A stretch of DNA of 64,000 bases, from contig OU015567.1 of the NCBI GenBank assembly GCA_907165135.1, positions 13,144,001 through 13,208,000 of the forward strand. Reading direction: 5' to 3'. The notes under the pieces are model-generated. The model saw nothing but the letters and a program-made list of their open reading frames with translations. It was not told the DNA's origin and searched no databases. Below, piece after piece: positions 50,796 to 60,629 of the stretch (the stretch's first letter is position 1; the number at the start of each line of letters is the position of its first letter). The DNA is from Oikopleura dioica. Lineage: Eukaryota; Animalia; Chordata. The position numbers were made by a program, and so were the translations under genes.

Positions 50796-51494
50796 TCAAC
50801 AAGCTGGAATATTGAATACTTTTCTTTTTGAAAAAAATAAATTCACTTTCTTTTTACTTTATCATAAAAATTCTTCGCGGAACAGACTTTGATAACGATC
50901 ACGAAATAATATTATAATAATGATATTCTCTCGAATGGGACTTGAAGTGATCTAAGCTGGATTTGAACTAACCTTGTTGACGTAAGTGTGTCCAACGCCG
51001 CTTCGGCATTGCCACTTGCCGCCCATGCACTCGTAGCCCATTCCACCGCAGTTGTAGATTTCGCAGATTTGGAGAGCATCGTTTTGGGAAAATCGGTTTC
51101 GCTGGACGACGACGGGCTTTCCGGATTCTCGGTGAACAACTGTTGGTTCTCCATTCACCGAAAAAGCGTAACCACCTTATAAAAAATCGTTAATATTAGT
51201 CTTCCGATTTCGTGGATGTCCTTGTTACGGAAGTTTATGTATCAAAAATTCATCGCTTAGAGATAATCTGGGATAAAATACGCGGCTTCCGTCCTTTCGA
51301 AATAATGAAAAAACGTGCGTGCGTTCGCCCTTCCTGAAATTCAAAAGCATGTCAGAAAAGCGTACATAAACTCGCCACGGAAAGTTAAAGGGCCAACCTC
51401 TCTAAGTGAAATTGTTTTTTTTTTTCGAGCAACGTCCTCAAAAAAAGTCTCATTCTTCCACTGCTTACCGTAATGCATGACAGATTGGAAATCG

Positions 51495-51647
51495 GAGAGA
51501 GGCGATTTTCTGGCAGTTAGATTTTCTGGCAGTTAGACTTTCTGGCAAAGGCGATTTTCTGGCACTGCCAGAAAATCTAACTTCCAGAAAATCGCCTTTG
51601 CCAGAAAATCTAACTGCCAGAAAGTCTAACTGCCAGAAAATCGCCTT
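51495..51647. repeat. Left TIR: self-palindromic array of 16-17 bp units (ATTTTCTGGC-AGTTAG/AAAGGCG)
   Basis: 4 forward units then 5 inverted units, forming a long hairpin. Confidence 0.92.
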
Positions 51648-52260
51648 TTTAGTATGCATATTATTTGAAACTCTGCAAAAAACTCTTTTTAATAAAATCA
51701 TTTATAAATTCGAAAAACTGGTGATTATCACACAAATTTCATTCCGGAGCAGTTTCAGCAGGAGTTTGCACCTTTCGACGGGAGCGTTTGATCTAAAAGC
51801 CGACTATTCAGGGCGCTAAAAAAGACGACGAATTTGGAATTGAAATTTCTGCGCTAAAAATAGAATGAGGGCAGCATCCACAGTTCGTTCTTGCTATTTT
51901 CGGAGTAACAAACGGGTTAACAGGCAGCTGAAAAGTTAGATTTTGATTTTTCTGAGAAAATGGAGGATGATGAAGAGAATGCGGATAGAAAAATGTTGAA
52001 ACTGACACCGATTCCACCACCTTCTGAGGAAGAATTTTCAGGATAGTTTTATAACAAGTTCAGTTTCAAAAAGCATTTGCGTGCGCCATTATCTCAGTGG
52101 GTGCTCACTGTGACCAAGTACTCGAAATCAGATGCAAACACCGGGTGATTAACACAGAAATTCCCGGAAGAAGCTGATTTATGTTTGCTACAGCTATTAA
52201 TCTTGAATAAATGGGTCAAAAGTGGCCTTTGTCAATGAATTTTTATAAAACGTGTAAGAA

Positions 52261-55200
52261 AACATTGGTGGTACTGTCGAAAACCCTGCCTTGGTAACGA
52301 TTCAACGAAACTCAAAAAACAATGCATCCTTCCTCGTCAAAGTTGCTTCCAGATCATTTGCTTTCAAAGCAAGAAAAGCGAAGAAAACGATTCTGCATTC
52401 TAAAAACGACGATCCTGACTTCCGTTTCAAGATGCGAGTCGAGTGTGAAAATCAATCATATTCGAAAGACGCTTCATTCCGCTGTTCAACGAAGATTTGG
52501 ATGTTTGCAAAAGTTGTTGATATGGAATCTCCTCGTTTTTTTGAGCTCAGCAATTGGCGATGTGGAAAGCTAGAGTCGAAAGTAGACATTCACATGAATA
52601 AATGTCTGAAGAACGATGCACTCGAAAAGAAGCGATTACAGTACGCAACGACTGTGTCCATGCTCAACAGGAACCAAATTCGCCCAAAAAGTCAACAGAC
52701 AATTCGTGGAGAAGTTCAAAAAGATTCACAACTTTCGAGCATGGAAAGAGGCAATCTTTTCACGAAAAAGGAGATGAGACGTCTTGCTCAGAATTCCAGA
52801 AAGTACGAAAGAAAAATAAAGGCCGCTACAGTTCCTGATCCTCGACGCTTGGAAGACTGGATGACAGTACTAGGAAAGTGATTTATTTGACCGAGCACAG
52901 ATGCACGAAAGAAATGACAGTGAATATAGTTTAGTTAAATCTTGAGTTGAATTATCCTTTAGAGCTTGGGACATCCTTGATACGGTAGAAAAGCAGAGGC
53001 CGTGCGTTCTTCTTTTTCCTTTGTCTTTCCCTGAACTAACATAAATTCGAAGCCGCAAGCGGCTTCTCTTACGATGCAGGAGTTCTTGGGGCTTCGAGGA
53101 CCCGAGCAGCGGGAGCTCCAGCTCGAGCGGGTGCTTTCTTTGCTGTTGTAGAAACTGCAGCGAATTTGAAGCGGGAGTCACACCAGCGTTCGCTCTCGCA
53201 TGAACGGGACCAAGAGGTTCTCCCTTTGAAATCAGAATTGAAAAAGGATTTCGCGTTCTTTTTGATTTACCTGATAGTTAGCGTCGAAAAACTTTTTAAA
53301 CCATTGAACGAAGTGTGAGACACTTGACAGTGGTGAAAGGAAATTACTTTGCATGACGTTGTCGCCACGGAAGCAGATTTCTCCTTTTCCTTCGCGCGCA
53401 TAATAATCCATGTCGGGCACGTCAACAAGTTTAAAAAATATTAGCCATCGGCAAATAGCTGAACCAGACGTCGCTTGTTTTCCAAGGCTCTTTAACCGAG
53501 AAGATTGTAATGCCACAGCAGACGGTGCAGATGTTCTTGTGAGTCAAGACGACGCCTTTCGGATCGCCAGTCGTGTCGGATGTGTAATTGATCGTAGCAA
53601 TGTCTGAATAATGAAATTAAATGATCGCCCCTATTTTTATCATTTTTACCTGAAGAAGTCGGCGGAACATTATCAAACGAGCTGTCTTTTCCGATTGCAA
53701 TAAAATCGTCGAAACTTATGATTTTATAATTGGAGGACTTGACCTTCTTGAATTTTCGAAACACAACGATTGTTTGAAGATGAGCAGGCTTGATTTTGAG
53801 AATGAGGTCAAGTTTCTTTTGATTTTGAACGAAGCAGATTGGAGCTTCAATCTGAAGAAAAAGTAAAAATAATCTCGTAAAGAAGTTGTAAACTTACGTG
53901 CTCGAGAATGTATTTGACTGCTTGTTCACCAAAAGTATCGTAAAGCGAAACATTGCATATATTTTGATAGTATCCTCCAATGATTACTGCGTCGTATTCG
54001 TAGCAATTCGACGAGTAGATCGCAATTTTGCTTTCTCCACTGATAAGTCCGTGCTTTTTCAGTGAATTCGCCAGGTATTGAGATGTTGCAGCGAACTCGC
54101 CATAAGTACGGGTCGTGTAATCTGTCAAATCTGGCGTCGGAGTGCCTCAAATGATAGCATTATCACTGGCGGTCTCTCTTCCTCGCTGGAAGCACTCAAG
54201 AATTGTCTGAATAACTGTAAAGAAAGTTCTGAGTGATACGCTTTACCTGTGGATAATCAGCTGGCAGAGTCCAGAGTCCTTTCTTCTCGCAGAGAATATT
54301 GTGTCTTGCGAAGGTTTCAGAATCTGCTTCATAACTTTGTGGCGCGTCAACGTAGTCTAATTTCTTGTTTCTGTGTAGAGTTATAATTTTGATGAAGACA
54401 AACCTTATCTACGCCCATTTTTTGAACGAGTTTTGCAAGACTTTGAAGTTATTGACATATTCGTGCTCGTGTTTTGCATTGTACTTTACTGTCTTTAGTC
54501 GGATGGAACCTAAACCAAATGTAGCTTGATTAAAAACGATTCGAAAGATGAGGGGTAAGGTGGAGACAACGAGGACATCATTTTTGTTTCACGAAACGAA
54601 CATTGAAAAGTAATAATTCATTAATAAATCACGAAAAGGCGATGGTGAAACAAAATGGATTCTAATGAATGAGTTTCTTTCGCCGGAACAACGAAGCCCG
54701 ATATGGGATGAAGCTCTAGCTTTTGCGACTCAACACGATTTGCGCATGCTGACCTCTTCAAAACACTGGTTTGTTGACGGTAAATTCTTTACGAAAGGCC
54801 AGCAAAAGAAGTTTGGCTACCGTCAACTCCTCATTATTGGATCAAGAGACCGAGATGATAGTGTTAATCCTAGATTCTTTATTATTCTCAAGGGTCAGTC
54901 TAAAGAAGGCTACAAGATTGTCTTTGAGGCTTTAAAGGAAATGATCAATATTGAAAATTTTGAACTTACTTGGTTCGGCAGCGAATTTGTCGTGTGTAAT
55001 AACGTTGATGAGGACCACAATCGGCCGTTCGGTAGTTTTGAATAGCAGAGCAGCCGATTTTCCTGAAAAACTGTAAATTGATCTACAAAAAGAAACTTTG
55101 TCCTGATTCTGAATTTACAACTGTCTCGTCCGATTTCGAACCTGGGCTCAGAAATTCGATTCGCGAAACATGGCCGGAGAAGAATCTACGCATGGTTGGG

Positions 55201-56017
55201 TGCTACTTTCATTGGTTACAGAGTGTTAGAAGATATTTACAAAGTCATGGACTGTTGGCACTCTGGGAGAAAAATGGAAAGATACTCCAAGCACTCATCC
55301 ATGCGATCCCATTCATTCACTTGACCGAACCTACATTCTACGACACATTTATGCAGCTTTTGCGTCGAACACTTGATGAACTGTCTACACCACTAATCAA
55401 AGACGAGATTAATGAGTTCTACAGATATCTTTCTACGACGTACTTGAATGACGATGCTAAATTCCCTCCTAGTTCATGGGCCCTTGCATTATCGATAGGA
55501 GCGAGGAATGGTTCAAAATTCTTGACTAATAACAGTCTTGAAATCATGGTAAGTTACCTTTTTCGATGGGAAATCTTGTAAAAACATCGAATTCGTGAAG
55601 ATGCGATTCCAACTAAAATTAAATGTTTAGAACTCATCCCTGGTGGATCAAGGAATCAACAATGCGACAGAGCTATCTACGGTCATCTCCATTGCTAATG
55701 GCTTTAAAAGTGAAAGCTTCAGTACGGAAATTGCTAAGCTTGAGAGCAACAGCCAGCAAAGTACTAAAAATGACAGATTGTGCGCCTTAGTTGCGGTTGT
55801 ACGCTACGAGCAGCTAGCAAGATTTGACAAAAAATGCGCAGAAAATGGCTCAATCGAAGAAGCAATTGTTTCTGTCGGCTTCGGCTTGATGAGGGCCAGA
55901 TCAAAGGCCGAGTCATTGAAATCTACTCAGAAACTCCGACATTTTATCAACAACGCCACGCAACCAGAAACTGCTGTATTTCAAAATTTGATTAAAGAAT
56001 CAACAGCTGACGTATAG
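52261..56017 (+). CDS. MULE transposase, multi-exon (possible further upstream exons from ATG 51960)
   Basis: N-terminal Cys/His region (ECENQ...RCSTK...HMNKC) at 52291-52873; catalytic core WFVDGKF...QL...Y..VF..L...SDFE...GCYFH...TNNSLE at 54639-55550; a GA-AG intron 52874-54638 joins the halves in frame (WMTVLG|DGETKWIL). Confidence 0.85.
53348..54370 (-). pseudogene. ACSL: Captured, decayed long-chain acyl-CoA synthetase fragment
   Basis: [38 protein letters not shown] (P-loop G to D), SYLPMA joined directly to [21 protein letters not shown]; in-frame TGA (NAII*GTP); retains its introns. Confidence 0.85.
54404..54509 (-). pseudogene. MAPRE: Captured single exon of EB1/MAPRE (CH domain)
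   Basis: Bounded by TTTAG| and |GTTTG; reads [36 protein letters not shown], closely matching the EB1 CH segment; neighbouring EB1 CH exons are absent. Confidence 0.88.
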
Positions 56018-56073
56018 TTACTATTTTTTATACAAAAATAAAAATTATTTAGTCATACCAGTTTCAAGAAGCA

Positions 56074-57322
56074 ATGCCTGTGATGTCCCCAGTTCGCGAT
56101 GAGCAAGAAACAGCTGGTGAGCAAGTTGACCCAGATCCTTTCGCTCAGCAAGGAGGAGAATTCGATTTGAGAAGAGTTGCGGCGCCAATCGCTCAGCCAG
56201 TTCAAAGAGTGGAAAGAAGAGTCGATGAGGAGACGAGCAATGATGAAGTCGATGTGCCAGCTGTTATCCATGAGTTCGACCCACCTCCAGTGGACTCTTT
56301 ACCGTCGGACAATGAGGATCGTGAGCCTGAAAACTGTAATATATCAAAAATGTAAATATCAAAAATTTAATATTTCTAGTTGAAAAATCGCCATCTCCAA
56401 TACATTGGGAACGACTTCTGGATAAAACCGATGAGATAGATGAAACGATCAGAAAACAGTTTCCAAATCGTCCTTCGTCTTCAGAATCGGAGCAAGGTAA
56501 CTGTCCATATTTAAAAAATAAATGACTTTCATTTAAGAAAATGACGAAGCCGGACAAGCTAATCGTTCTCGTCCAACATCTGATTCTTACCGGAATTTTG
56601 ATGACAGAACTAGTCCCGAAAAGCTGGTTCTATCTGAACCCAAGCAGCCACGGAAGTATATTCGCAGCGCAAAATCCGCAAAACAGCGCAAAACGCGGGA
56701 TCTTTCATTGTCAGATTCTGAATCGGATCGTAAGTTTAGTTTTATCAAGCAGAATGTTAATTATTCTAGATGAGCGCCCCGAATCTTCGCAAAATACGCG
56801 TAGTTTGTGCGCAAAAGTGAAGCGGAATGCGAAAAAATCAACCTATTGCGAGCATGATTCCCCACCAAAAAAGAAAAAGAAGAAAACTGAAGCCGAAGTG
56901 CGTTTGGCAGCCCAAATTGCGAAAGAAAAGAAAATTCTTAAAGAAAGAAATCGAAAAAAAAGAGAAAATGATCCTAAGGTAATGCTTGTATGTTTCTTTA
57001 AGAAAATAGCAGAATATTTAGGGCTACTATGCTGATATAGCAAATAAACGGCGTCAAACCATTCAAAGAAAAAAAGAACAAAATGAAGAGTTGATCGCAG
57101 AGTTACGGGAAGAGCTGGAAAAAATGAAGGCGGAAAATGCGAAATTGCGAAAACGCGAAGAAATGAGAAAAGCAGATATCCCAGGATTGTTTACACGTAT
57201 ATAATGGTTTCTTATTTAATTGTATTTAATTAGAATAACTTGATAAATAATAAAAAGACGATGACGATTTGATGCGCCAATTAAAAGAAGTACTCGCCAC
57301 TTCCGACGAAGAAGACTTCTGA
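56074..57322 (+). CDS. Second element-borne gene: acidic N-terminus, basic region and coiled coil (bZIP-like)
   Basis: Exons with GT-AG boundaries: MPVMSPVRDEQ...; PPKKKKKKT...KERNRKKRENDPK|; ...KRRQTIQRKKEQNEELIAELREELEKMKAENAKLRKREE; ends ATSDEEDF* at 57320-22. Confidence 0.6.
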
Positions 57323-58485
57323 TGTTCTATAAAAAAAGCTCCTTACATTTTCATCAAACTCGTTACATTCGTTACGGACGATTTCCATAGGTCAGAGCCG
57401 TTACAAAATTACCGGGGCAAACTTGCTGTTGCTCTAGCGCCTAAGGGTTACATTGTAGCCCAAGACATCTTTATACGTATCGACGGAGAATCTCAAGCTC
57501 TATGCCAGTATCATCTCAGATTTTCGAGATCTCAAAAAATTTCGGATTTATGGCGATTTTTCATTTTTCAAAGGACTACGTGTCCCTAATTCAGCCAATC
57601 ACAGCACTGTATTTGACGCATTTGCACCGGTAAATTTGTAACGTCTCAGTTAATTGAAGCCGCTGAAAAATAAACCAATAAGTGAAAAAATTGATTGCAA
57701 AAGAAAATTCGAAACTCCTTTCCTATATATTTTTCTTCTTCGTTGGAGCTCCTAAAGATGGAATCGAGCACGTCGTTTTGTTGATTCATCGAGTTCCTAG
57801 AATTCGGAAGCTTTCTTTGTTGTCTGCGAGAAGAATACTGGCAGGAAGTTCTTCAATATCTTTCGAGGAGTTCAAAATCATGTTAAATTAAAGAAAGGGC
57901 ACAATTATAACGGGTAAATTCTTCTGGAGGCCCACAATTATAACGGGTTCAATATTCTCCCCGTTGTTATTTTATATGGTCAATTTTCAACACTGAGTCC
58001 TTTCTGAAATTGAAATTCTGAATTAAAATTTAAAAATGATAGACAGTATTTTAGTTTCGCAACTCGTAAAGCTTTAATGTCAAAAATTGAAAAAAAATAG
58101 AAACATTTAACTTATCAACGGTTTGTGCATCGAAAGAGAGAAGAAAACGCATCATACATTAAATACGAAAGGTTGAAGTTTGGAGGCGAAACAAAGCGGA
58201 AACACAGTTCATAAGTTTTAAGCGAATTGGGCAAAATTTTATAGGCAGTTAATTCTTCTCTAATTCCTCTGGCAGTTAATTCTTCTCTGATCTTCATCAT
58301 TTCCGCTTGAAAAAAACCGTTGATTTATCAACTAAATTCAGGCGAGCACAGCGCGGCGAATAAGGGAGGAGCGCGCCGCCCACGCGCGCCTGACTATTTC
58401 TCAGAAGAATCAGAAGATGAATTCCGAGCTCTTCTTCTCTCCGTTTTTATCTTCCAGGATCATTAACTATAGATGTGAAATCAAA

Positions 58486-58606
58486 GAGGCGATTTTCTGG
58501 CAGTTAGACTTTCTGGCATATTAGATTTTCTGGCATTGCCAGAAAATCGCCTTTGCCAGAAAGTCTAACTGCCAGAAAATCTAACTGCCAGAAAATCGCC
58601 TCCCTC
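58486..58606. repeat. Right TIR: self-palindromic array of the same units
   Basis: 3 forward plus 4 inverted units; its reverse complement matches the left TIR over about 86 bp. Confidence 0.92.
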
Positions 58607-60629
58607 TGGAAATCGTAGTCGCCACCTTCGGAAGATGATTCCCACTCATGGAGGGGCAGCTGATCGAATTGCGCGTTGCAACTCTCTTGTCCAGTTGAGC
58701 CGCACATGTTTCCGATGTTTTGGTACTAGAGAACAGCATTTTTAAACAATCGAAAATCAAGATGAATCTGACAAAATTAAGTTAAGATCAACTAGTTTTC
58801 TGCGAAAAATACAGTAGATGTTTCATAATGTGAAAAAACTCTTATTGAAAAGTGACGCTTATCACACATTTTCATCGAAATAAATCTCCGTTTTAAGCTT
58901 GTTACCTTGACTTCGATGTATTTTTGGCGTCCGGTCGAGCCTGTTCGTGATAAAATCCAAGCGCATGCATAAATTCGTGCTGAACGGTTCCTCTCGAGAC
59001 GCAACCCAGCGATCTAATGGAGATCTCCTGTTCGCTCACGCCCTGAAAGCCGACGTAGGAATAGCAGCCCGATCCACTCGTGATTTTGATCTTGCTGTCG
59101 TAACTTCTGTCCTTTGCGTTGACGAGTCGGAAGTCAATGCAGGTATTCGATCCAAGATCAAAGAGAGCTCGCTTGATGTCCTCTCGCAACTCGGCTGGGT
59201 AATTGTCTTGGAAGTAGAACGGAATCACGTGCCTGAAAAACAAAAGGTTAATTCAGGGAGAAAAAGGAAGATGAGCGGTGAATCCAATCTGGGCAAAATG
59301 GAATTCCCCGTCTTCAAAAAAATGTGACGGATGGGCTGACTGGCTAAACCAAAGCCACTGAGCTCATTTGCCACCTGCCCTGTTACTCGGGACGGAGAAA
59401 TCGCGCAGTAGCTACTGTACAAGAAACACGTGTATTTGAAACTTACTTGTTGTGTTCTCTGTATTGATCCCACTTGACAACAGCTCCAATAGCTCTGGTG
59501 AGCTCTCTTCTTCGTTCCATCGCGTCCGTTGTTTCGTTTCTGTTCATTCCATTCCTCGCCAAATACTGCCGGTAAAGAGGGTTGATGTCGAGAGTTGGGT
59601 CAATTCTATGTCCAATCGTCGATTGTCCCTTGTCGCGCATCTTCTGCGCCTGCCACTCGCCAAAAATCATATCGTCTTCGCGTCCACCGCGTTCCAATTC
59701 GCTTCCTGCAAATCGGGTATCAACAAGTTTACACAAGTTCCACGACAGTTCCCTCATTTAGAAAGCGATTAATGGCGGACAGTTACACGCGATCGCTTCC
59801 GTTTACGAGAAATTATAATGCAAGTGAATTTAACATAGATTATATTCCGATGGAATCGCTCATCAGACAATTTTCAAGAGCAATTTTTAGTTGAAAATCA
59901 AAGAAATAAGGCCAAAGAATCAAAGAGATTTTAGATATTTCGACTACTAAGAGGCTTATAAGATCATTTTTAGAAGGACTTGAAAGTAAGTGTTCTATGC
60001 GAAGGAACGCGTGGAAATCGGATCGATGCTCGGTGTCACCCAGAAGATGTGACAGTAAATACGATTATGGTTTCTCTAGGCAGCGCGCTCCCAACCCGTT
60101 GCGTCTAATTCTGTTGACGCTTTTCCAAAGATCAGCCCCTCCTCAGCTTTGCCGAGCCCACTGCCGACTTTTTAATTTATAAACTTAGCTTGGATTCCTC
60201 CTCTGATTTTCGAGAAAGCCGAGGTCTTACAAGACGAAAAACCGTAACAGTGGAGAGGCGTGAAATTTAGAAGAAACTTGTCGGAAGTGAATTTCCCACG
60301 GTGAATGATCGAATTTATTAAAACAAGAAAAATAAAGTCAATTGGTGTGGTGGAAGCTCCCGGAAGTTATTACGTACGGCGATAAACTACCGACCAGCAA
60401 TGTCGTGTAGGAATAATCTTGTTTCACCTTTAATTTTCAGAATGATGCATTTTTAACTTATTTTAGATTCTATCAATGAAGAAGAAAGATTGGGAGAAGA
60501 CACGAATCGACAAAAAGGCGAAAAACTTTTAAACCAATCAAATATTCGTATTCGGCCCGCGAGCCAATGAGATTACAGAAAAAAAAGGCACAAAATTTGA
60601 GTTGATTGTAACATTTTTGCCGATTCAAG

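Follow-up and report, generated by a model that had tools for sequence, protein, structure and literature searches.

The capture of host gene sequence by Mutator-like elements (MULEs) is well known in plants and, to our knowledge, hardly recorded in animals. Plants also possess autonomous MULEs that carry host-derived genes, such as KI-MULE with its ULP-like protease and MuDR with mudrB. The combination of a FLYWCH domain with a MULE domain is the architecture of the Phantom elements. The Pack-MULEs of plants are said to have been described by Jiang et al. in 2004, from rice and maize.

Published surveys find MULEs to be nearly absent from chordates, with a single sequence from Ciona savignyi (PMC6446971), and among 100 reference genomes of animals Tan et al. 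(2021, PMC8277862) detected no Pack-MULE. The present work concerns a 7.1-kb Mutator-type element of Oikopleura dioica which occupies positions 51486-58615, including both copies of its target-site duplication (TSD), of a 64-kb stretch of DNA that was analysed as a whole and is called the window below. This is probably a recently amplified, gene-carrying, cut-and-paste MULE of the Okinawa lineage of the species, with a multi-exon transposase of its own. A multicopy and essentially undiverged MULE that holds host gene fragments together with a transposase, in a chordate that can be cultured in the laboratory, would make it possible to test in an animal how MULEs acquire genes, what relevance their cargo has (antisense RNA, conflict with silencing) and how they mutate genes (here an astacin exon), and if the MULE is active it may offer a tool for transgenesis or mutagenesis in Oikopleura.

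Ends, insertion site and copies of the element

The borders of the element, and the exon within which it lies, comprise the following features.

51465..51485, minus strand: downstream end of the interrupted astacin exon (SVMHY, followed by a GTAAG donor)
51486..51494, no strand: left TSD, TGGAAATCG; its minus strand gives the DFQ codons of the astacin exon
51495..51650, no strand: left terminal foldback, with the TIR 51495-51580 as its outer arm and an inverted copy of this TIR as its inner arm
58483..58606, no strand: right terminal foldback, with the TIR 58521-58606 as its outer arm
58607..58615, no strand: right TSD, TGGAAATCG
58616..58707, minus strand: upstream portion of the interrupted astacin exon (...CGSTGQESCNAQFDQLPLHEWESSSEGGDY)

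The initial annotation had claimed a perfect 9-bp direct repeat and TIRs of about 86 bp with two mismatches, and both hold: the repeat directly adjoins the two ends of the element, where a flanking 9-mer match would arise by chance with a probability of about 4e-6, and the TIRs are 86 nt long and 98% complementary. The left TIR begins GAGAGAGGCG and continues with 16-nt subrepeats GATTTTCTGGCAGTTA. Each end is a near-perfect foldback made of such subrepeats, the palindromes being 124-156 nt long; the arms of the left foldback (51500-51562 and 51584-51646) match at 97%, and the computed DNA folds have energies of -73 kcal/mol (z -18) on the left and -50 kcal/mol (z -13) on the right. This foldback structure did not figure in the initial annotation. 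In the proposed mechanism the ends would be bound by the transposase, with the 16-nt subrepeats as putative binding sites. A pattern scan of JGI metagenome contigs gave no match to the exact TIR 21-mer, and the only contigs there that matched the subrepeat pattern were two unrelated high-GC bacterial ones.

The astacin exon that precedes the split one (58905-59243) is recognized by the Pfam Astacin family at E 4e-27, and deletion of the element with one copy of the TSD exactly restores the reading frame of the split exon (...DYDFQSVMHY). The copy in the window landed in a coding exon of astacin just before the Met-turn, and the astacin protein is truncated by the insertion if the element is not spliced out. 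Exact splicing-out was considered and rejected, since sliding the borders within the TSD yields no G-N...A-G pair. Of the empty alleles for which a search had been proposed at the outset, none from the same population was found, but the orthologous site holds a single TGGAAATCG and no element in the marine-metagenome contigs L001 and L005, which are all the astacin contigs that reach it and which come from diverged Oikopleura lineages, with about 83-87% nucleotide identity to the flanks. L005 is syntenic with the window over 18 kb, and the astacin contig closest to the window, L004 (89.7%), stops short of the insertion site.

Three further full copies are found in the Okinawa assembly of O. 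dioica (GCA_907165135.1), one on chr1 (L002) and two in the PAR (L011 and L012), each with its own perfect 9-bp TSD (the three being CAAGTTCTT, CACTTCACG and CTATCTATC). The flanks differ among the four copies, all four TSDs are distinct, and the copies show one substitution in total over 7.1 kb, homopolymer lengths aside; their coding sequence is identical except for one homopolymer in L002, which frameshifts the tail. A fifth annotated locus, chr2.g7706, may be the window copy itself. It is extremely improbable that these 7.1-kb repeats are the product of segmental duplication or an artefact of assembly. The differences between copies, which are nearly all of homopolymer length as is typical of Nanopore assemblies, would suit an artefact, but in each of the four loci the similarity stops precisely at the tips of the TIRs, every locus has its own 9-bp repeat and unrelated flanking genes, and orthologous sites are empty, and on these grounds both mis-assembly and segmental duplication were rejected. 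The empty orthologous sites and the four near-identical copies in different contexts instead establish transposition of the element, and the whole unit has spread very recently to at least four places.

The transposase gene

The coding blocks on the plus strand of the element are listed here.

52258..52878, plus strand: exon A, an N-terminal coding block of about 205 codons, conserved and free of stops
54665..54967, plus strand: exon B, covering the first half of the catalytic MULE core with D1 (VDGKF); borders approximate
55093..55548, plus strand: exon C, which completes the core with D2 (SDFE), GCYFH and TNNSLE
55631..57322, plus strand: exon D and the C-terminal tail exons, matched at 100% identity by P0023 and P0181

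Exons B and C are colinear with a MULE profile built from 39 homologues, matching its positions 160-243 (E 2e-12) and 243-375 (E 5e-35), respectively, and the motifs VDGKF, SDFE, GCYFH and TNNSLE, which had been cited initially (the last two as CYFH and NNSLE) as the signature of a MULE transposase, fall in the D, D, CxxH and E columns; the consensus motifs common to animal MULE transposases are DGxF, DFE, GCxFH and NNxxE. A library search with exon C matched 212 homologues. Nine of the ten homologues scanned score above threshold with the Pfam MULE family PF10551, the exception being the element's own P0023, and two of the ten (P0031 and P0041) combine MULE with FLYWCH. Applied to single exons, PF10551 gives 14 bits for exon C, against a cut-off of 27.6, and no match for exon B, because the intron splits the domain. 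At the level of sequence, the core catalytic exons are intact and of MULE affinity. Computed against the related element L003/L010, dN/dS is 0.13 for exon A (76% amino-acid identity to L003), 0.17 for exon B and 0.09 for exon C, and such values relative to a diverged relative indicate long-term purifying selection on all three exons.

No in-frame ATG precedes position 52432 in exon A, and no upstream exon was found. A DNA-binding domain was sought in exon A with Pfam, which gave only a sub-threshold match to a UTP6-like family, and with a PDB search, which gave nothing; FLYWCH had no Pfam match even at E<=10, and hhalign comparison of exon A with the N-termini of the homologues returned a probability of 3.7%. 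The AF2 model of exon A is too poor (pLDDT 41) to serve in a fold search.

The exons downstream of the core lie at 55631-56011, 56053-56335, 56380-56495, 56537-56729, 56770-56978, 57022-57184 and 57257-57322. Their introns are of the GT-AG type and 40-47 nt long, with one GA-AG intron, and the intron between exons C and D measures 82 nt. This region is what had been taken initially for a separate bZIP-like gene. Pfam gives no match to bZIP families at E<=1 on 57022-57201 and none on P0023, and in the public gene models P0023 and P0181 the reading frame of the transposase runs on into these exons by splicing; a bZIP transcription factor was rejected for both reasons, and the supposed second gene most likely consists of the C-terminal exons of the transposase gene.

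In-frame GT-AG splice solutions for the core exons can be computed, and the spliced reading frame from exon C onward has 606 codons; in the related copy L003 there is a stop at the border of exons B and C. Spliced as predicted around exons A-C, the gene would encode a DDE transposase of about 900 residues, with an N-terminal part from exon A, a core from exons B and C, then a part from exon D, and at the end a long coiled-coil tail of basic/acidic character. The element may nonetheless be mobile without being autonomous, with a dead transposase gene and copies moved in trans by a MULE that has the same ends, in which case it would function as a large Pack-MULE. What speaks for this is that the A-B and B-C splice junctions are predicted ones and the 5' start is tentative, that the public annotation has no single gene that joins exons A-C and begins its models at an internal Met, and that the searches for a DNA-binding domain in exon A detected none. 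The proposal is unlikely, since the coding blocks are all stop-free and, apart from the L002 homopolymer, the same in every copy, the catalytic motifs are intact, the dN/dS values point to long-term selection, and no other source of transposase was seen. On the preferred reading, the element would make its own transposase, this protein would catalyse its moves, and the element would be autonomous.

The cargo of the first intron

Host-gene cargo lies in antisense orientation between exons A and B, in the first intron of the transposase gene (about 1.7 kb), and is arranged as follows.

52879..53315, minus strand: EB1-like cargo block; a 15-residue motif (53315-53271), then an intron, then an unrecognisable exon-like stretch
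53316..53434, minus strand: ACSL cargo segment 2; the end of parent exon 5 and the start of the next intron
53435..54371, minus strand: ACSL cargo segment 1; exons 1-4 of the parent and their introns, from 10 nt after the parent ATG
54372..54617, no strand: the rest of the intron or "cargo bay", with no match to L006 or L003 and no Pfam match

Fragments of two host genes had been reported initially, and the two have fared differently. The ACSL fragment stands: its 1.06 kb are colinear, introns included, with L006, an ACSL locus on a Logan contig from another Oikopleura sample which represents a diverged lineage (pS 0.24), apart from an internal deletion of 539 bp. Segment 1 is 90.7% identical to L006 912-1845 and segment 2 is 96.6% identical to L006 2385-2503, the Pfam AMP-binding family matches the cargo at E 7e-12 and 9e-16, and pN/pS relative to L006 is 0.11. 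In segment 1, moreover, a nonsense change has turned TGT into TGA, and the TSGTTG motif has a G>D replacement. The alignment traces this cargo to an ACSL parent locus. For EB1 the evidence is thin, namely the 15-residue motif, which matches the end of the CH domain of EB1/EB3 (PDB E 0.0015) and is followed by a 47-nt GT-AG intron (53270-53224); outside the motif, no stop-free segment on the minus strand of 52851-53360 had a relevant match in Pfam or the PDB. On these 15 or so residues, an EB1 origin of the short piece is probable.

In the public annotation of O. dioica the cargo fragments are called genes and the transposase is truncated. A minus-strand gene is placed over the EB1-like block with 131 aa in L002 and 104 aa in L012, and in L011 the EB1-like and ACSL blocks are merged in one model of 395 aa.

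In the proposed sequence of events, the ACSL piece, and probably the EB1 piece, would have been copied at the DNA level with their introns, and then rearranged and partly decayed. The cargo would thus have been gained first, and the whole 7.1-kb unit would then have moved several times, producing a 9-bp target duplication at each event.

In a related subfamily exon A, a cargo bay, exon B and exon C follow one another as they do here, with an antisense VPS28 fragment at the position of the cargo (Pfam E 9.5e-13). This conserved order bears on the proposal that the element is a composite transposon, in which two foldback, MITE-like units bracket passenger DNA that includes the transposase gene, in the manner of FB-type elements like Ssk-FB4. 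The composite arrangement would account for the fact that each end is a self-contained palindrome, and capture of a gene flanked by FB4 has been described (Tan et al. 2021, PMC8277862), but it is distinctly improbable here: the shared order indicates that the element has long been an integrated unit and was not bracketed by chance, the 9-bp TSD fits the internal MULE transposase, and no solo hairpin units with the exact subrepeats were found in the window or in the JGI metagenomes.

If the unit is an integrated MULE, as preferred, a tentative and somewhat doubtful extension is that the first intron of the transposase gene is a dedicated "cargo bay" of Oikopleura MULEs, which would repeatedly take up antisense pieces of expressed host genes, with ACSL and EB1 in the present subfamily and VPS28 in its sister subfamily as examples. 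Elements so loaded would stay autonomous and go on spreading, and transcription of the transposase would yield antisense RNA to host genes, which might shield the element from RNA-based silencing or modulate the genes; any effect of the cargo may be of this kind. The compact genome of this chordate would then be a live animal system for transposon-mediated gene shuffling.

Class membership and comparison with known systems

Membership of the MULE/MuDR superfamily is recognized by a TSD of about 9 bp (8-11), TIRs, a transposase with DDE and CxxH homology and evidence of transposition, all of which the element has. The reading of the initial annotation, a recent, possibly autonomous, gene-capturing MULE in a chordate, is sustained by the near-identical copies, the distinct TSDs, the empty sites, the selected core and the ACSL parent locus. 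Its label of Pack-MULE applies in part: host-gene fragments do lie between MULE ends (1.06 kb of ACSL and a short motif of EB1), but the element keeps a transposase gene with intact MULE core exons under purifying selection, and it fails to qualify in the strict sense because the term denotes non-autonomous elements.

Like the Pack-MULEs of plants, the Oikopleura element combines MULE ends and a 9-bp TSD with the capture, at the DNA level, of rearranged and intron-containing pieces of more than one host gene, and it was amplified after capture, with a distinct TSD for each copy; it departs from them in keeping the transposase gene, in having a chordate host, and in holding its cargo antisense in the first intron of the transposase.

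It resembles the Phantom/Foldback-type element Tm1 of Meloidogyne in its 9-bp TSD and in having composite TIRs, built of short tandem repeats with foldback potential, the subrepeats being 13-15 bp long in Tm1 and 16 nt here (PMC3169594). Unlike Phantom and Tm1, it has no FLYWCH detected in exon A, its protein is much longer, with many introns and a large C-terminal tail, and it carries fragments of protein-coding host genes.

Ssk-FB4 of Drosophila (PMC8277862) is likewise an animal element with MULE-like TSDs of 9-10 bp, foldback ends, a captured host gene and several copies. FB4, however, is non-autonomous and has TIRs of about 700 bp, and the Ssk copy that it captured is a coding one which may be functional, whereas the Oikopleura cargo is decayed and antisense and travels with a transposase. 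Muta1 of Aedes aegypti (PMC5225508, PMC5499845) is also an animal MULE with evidence of current activity; compared by description only, it differs in being compact and in having no reported host-gene cargo.

The element finally resembles KI-MULE and MuDR in being a transposase-encoding MULE that carries host-derived sequence. In those two plant elements the extra component is a separate gene in sense orientation, while in Oikopleura the host-derived sequence consists of antisense intronic fragments, and the additional coding exons are joined by splicing to the transposase itself.

Insertion site, element ends and mobility

The element is an insertion into an astacin exon. When it is removed on the minus strand together with one target-site duplication (TSD), …EGGDYDFQ joins SVMHYG… in a single frame, giving the Met-turn region of an astacin, and the preceding exon (58905-59243) matches Pfam Astacin (E 4e-27). 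The site is empty in two marine-metagenome contigs, L001 (2.4 kb) and L005 (8.7 kb), where the astacin exon is unbroken, carries a single TGGAAATCG and ends MHY/GTAAG; L005 is syntenic with window 63051-44899, and both contigs, at 83-87% identity to the element flanks, come from diverged Oikopleura lineages. In the window the astacin frame enters the terminal inverted repeat (TIR) and meets a stop after 34 codons. On the minus strand the TIRs carry a GT at 58585-58584 (21 nt into the right end) and an AG at 51511-51510 (15 nt short of the left end); in a purely theoretical reading of the sequence these could bound a 7,076-nt intron, which would leave a 45-nt in-frame insert, REAIFWQKSPLSDFQ, just upstream of the Met-turn. 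Exact splice-out of the element through an AG acceptor is not possible.

The perfect 9-bp direct repeat described in the initial annotation is present as TGGAAATCG at 51486-51494 and 58607-58615, abutting both element ends, and the TIRs directly inside it (51495-51580 and 58521-58606), put there at about 86 bp, measure 86 nt at 98% complementarity. Beyond plain TIRs, both termini are near-perfect foldbacks made up of 16-nt subrepeats of GATTTTCTGGCAGTTA:

51500-51562 and 51584-51646: arms of the left foldback
58483-58606: right foldback

The 18-mer GATTTTCTGGCAGTTA, with up to 3 mismatches allowed, occurs 9 times in the window (0.13 expected), always at the element's two ends, and as single-stranded DNA the left end folds at -73 kcal/mol (z -18) and the right at -50 kcal/mol (z -13).

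A library search with transposase exon C (55093-55548) returned P0023 (CAG5105060.1, Oidioi.mRNA.OKI2018_I69.chr1.g1797, Oikopleura dioica), a protein model that matches part of the element at 100% identity and whose 90%-identity cluster includes PAR.g10185, PAR.g9076 and chr2.g7706; the last of these must be a fifth copy, unless it is the window copy itself. The Okinawa assembly of O. dioica is GCA_907165135 (10.1101/2024.05.09.593300). Around these genes, three loci besides the window copy each hold the complete 7.1-kb element from tip to tip.

Full copies and their TSDs
Window copy: TGGAAATCG
L002, OU015566.1, about 6.85 Mb: CAAGTTCTT
L011, OU015568.1, about 6.46 Mb: CACTTCACG
L012, OU015568.1, about 2.37 Mb: CTATCTATC

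At every locus similarity ends exactly at the TIR tips, the neighbouring genes are unrelated and the 9-bp repeats are perfect. The four-copy alignment contains one substitution in all, beyond which the copies differ only in the length of homopolymers, possibly through Nanopore error; since every indel between copies lies in a homopolymer, assembly error is indistinguishable there from real variation. Full copies with distinct TSDs and near-zero divergence indicate at least three very recent transpositions of the entire unit together with its cargo. These copies and their TSDs, together with the empty sites and the intact core described below, support the earlier proposal of a recent gene-capturing MULE in a chordate, and it can be said with high confidence that the element is a recently mobile MULE carrying captured host DNA.

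The transposase and its C-terminal tail

An intron divides the MULE domain, so the Pfam model barely matches exon C (14 bits). Searched with phmmer against 1.84 billion representatives, exon C found 212 matches at E<=1e-3, and PF10551 was passed by nine of ten scanned homologues, two of them also with FLYWCH; the tenth, with no Pfam family match, was the element's own P0023. A transposase profile built from 39 full-length exon C matches aligns to two stop-free blocks colinear with it, 54617-55042 (profile positions 160-243, E 2e-12) and 55042-55578 (positions 243-375, E 5e-35), and each catalytic motif initially reported falls on its profile counterpart: VDGKF on vDGTF, SDFE on vDFE, GCYFH on GClFH and TNNSLE on TnNavE.

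A related subfamily (L003 and L010, 99.7% identical to one another, from two ENA samples) shares 78% nucleotide identity with the element in exon A (52258-52878) and 70% in exons B (54665-54967) and C. Against it, dN/dS is 0.13 in exon A, 0.17 in exon B and 0.09 in exon C, at pS 0.56-0.73, which argues that all three, exon A included, have been kept as coding sequence. The A-B and B-C junctions have several in-frame splice solutions, canonical GT-AG ones among them, and GA-AG solutions also exist. In exon A conservation starts abruptly at about 52262, the first in-frame ATG does not precede 52432, and domain searches found no domain. Its C-terminal part (52729-52830, +) has a sub-threshold match to the UTP6 N-terminus (PF08640, E 7e-5; 23.1 bits, the cut-off being 24.7) that weakens to E 0.028 in L003 and may reflect chance or an ancient in-frame capture.

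From exon C onward P0023 and a second model, P0181, map at 100% identity with GT-AG introns of 40-82 nt; splicing accordingly gives a 606-codon ORF, after which one GA-AG intron precedes the final, acidic exon, whose end is at 57322. In P0181 this non-canonical intron is 57185-57256 (+) and the acidic exon reads DDDDLMRQLKEVLATSDEEDF; introns in the OKI2018_I69 annotation have a median length of 49 bp, and 11% of them are non-canonical (PMC8008620). The separate bZIP-like gene proposed at first (from 56074) is not supported: it joins exon D in frame through a 41-nt intron whose splicing drops the stop codon at 56015, and Pfam detects no bZIP family in it. We interpret it as the C-terminal tail of the transposase, basic, acidic and coiled-coil-like, though retention of the intron might still yield a separate downstream ORF. 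A one-base homopolymer difference (A8 at window 57068, A9 in L002) frameshifts this tail in the chr1 copy; P0023 stops at …RKKRTK and P0181 runs on as …RKKEQNEEL…. In the public OKI2018_I69 models (481-535 aa) the transposase starts from an internal Met, which leaves out exon C's first half as well as exons A and B.

Captured host sequence

Between exons A and B (52879-54617) lies host sequence, on the strand opposite to the transposase. Its ACSL part is matched by L006, a Logan contig (SRR23998815) with a multi-exon AMP-binding gene beside a sulfotransferase.

Segments of the interval
54372-54617: rest of the A-B interval (no match to L006 or L003, no Pfam family)
54371-53435, minus: ACSL segment 1 (L006 912-1845, 90.7%)
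53434-53316, minus: ACSL segment 2 (L006 2385-2503, 96.6%)

The match takes in parent introns and begins 10 nt past the parent ATG; 539 bp of the parent are absent, and the cargo shows a TGT>TGA nonsense change, G>D in the TSGTTGDPKG motif and H>N beside the junction. Across five exons pN is 0.025 against a pS of 0.236, a ratio of 0.11, which suggests that divergence mostly accumulated under selection, that L006 is thus an orthologue from a diverged lineage, and that capture was recent relative to the split from it.

At 53315-53271 (minus) 15 residues match the end of the EB1/EB3 CH domain (best E 0.0015), with nine RP/EB-family sequences among the top matches; a 47-nt GT-AG intron and a further exon follow, and no other part of 52879-53270 is recognisable. 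Of the two host-gene fragments first reported, ACSL is confirmed, being colinear with L006 introns included, and derivation from EB1 is probable but thin, the match being about 15 residues long. The two ACSL segments abut directly at 53434/53435; at 53315/53316 an ACSL intron joins mid-EB1 exon, and the pieces share an open reading frame across that junction (53235-53543, minus). The OKI2018_I69 annotation calls decayed cargo as protein-coding genes, e.g. 256-aa and 395-aa 'AMP-binding' products.

Annotated cargo 'genes' (all minus)
L002 7517-9065
L011 7518-9067
L012 7599-9066

In the L003/L010 element exons A and B are separated by another spacer, of 1.0 kb, opened right after exon A by an antisense VPS28 fragment (L003 932-1099, minus, Pfam E 9.5e-13; two ENA marine metagenome samples). 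VPS28 there and EB1/ACSL here, at the same position, show that cargo at this site varies between subfamilies.

Mechanism and comparison with known systems

The ends are of MULE type with a 9-bp TSD, the whole loaded unit has transposed, and the DDE core is intact and selected. The element's own transposase would bind the 16-nt subrepeats and carry out cut-and-paste, and autonomy is favoured by a modest margin. Cargo may have been gained by the repair or template-switching routes put forward for Pack-MULEs, and kept because an intron tolerates it; the antisense cargo may be transcribed together with the transposase.

The previous record of chordate MULEs was a single Ciona savignyi sequence (PMC6446971), and a literature search found no paper on Oikopleura MULEs. 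The ends resemble those of Tm1 (Phantom/Foldback-type), whose composite TIRs consist of repeats of 13-15 bp and whose TSD is 9 bp long (PMC3169594), in being subrepeat-built foldbacks with a 9-bp TSD, but no FLYWCH finger was found in the Oikopleura element. The feature is real, the initial annotation is largely confirmed, and its interpretation is supported once two points are corrected: the second gene, which is most likely the tail of the transposase, and the label Pack-MULE in its strict sense. A survey of 100 animal reference genomes found no Pack-MULE, the sole animal case being Ssk-FB4 of Drosophila (PMC8277862). Of the label Pack-MULE-like, gene capture stands, and the element behaves as a MULE that captures genes; it falls outside the strict Pack-MULE definition, which requires a non-autonomous element.
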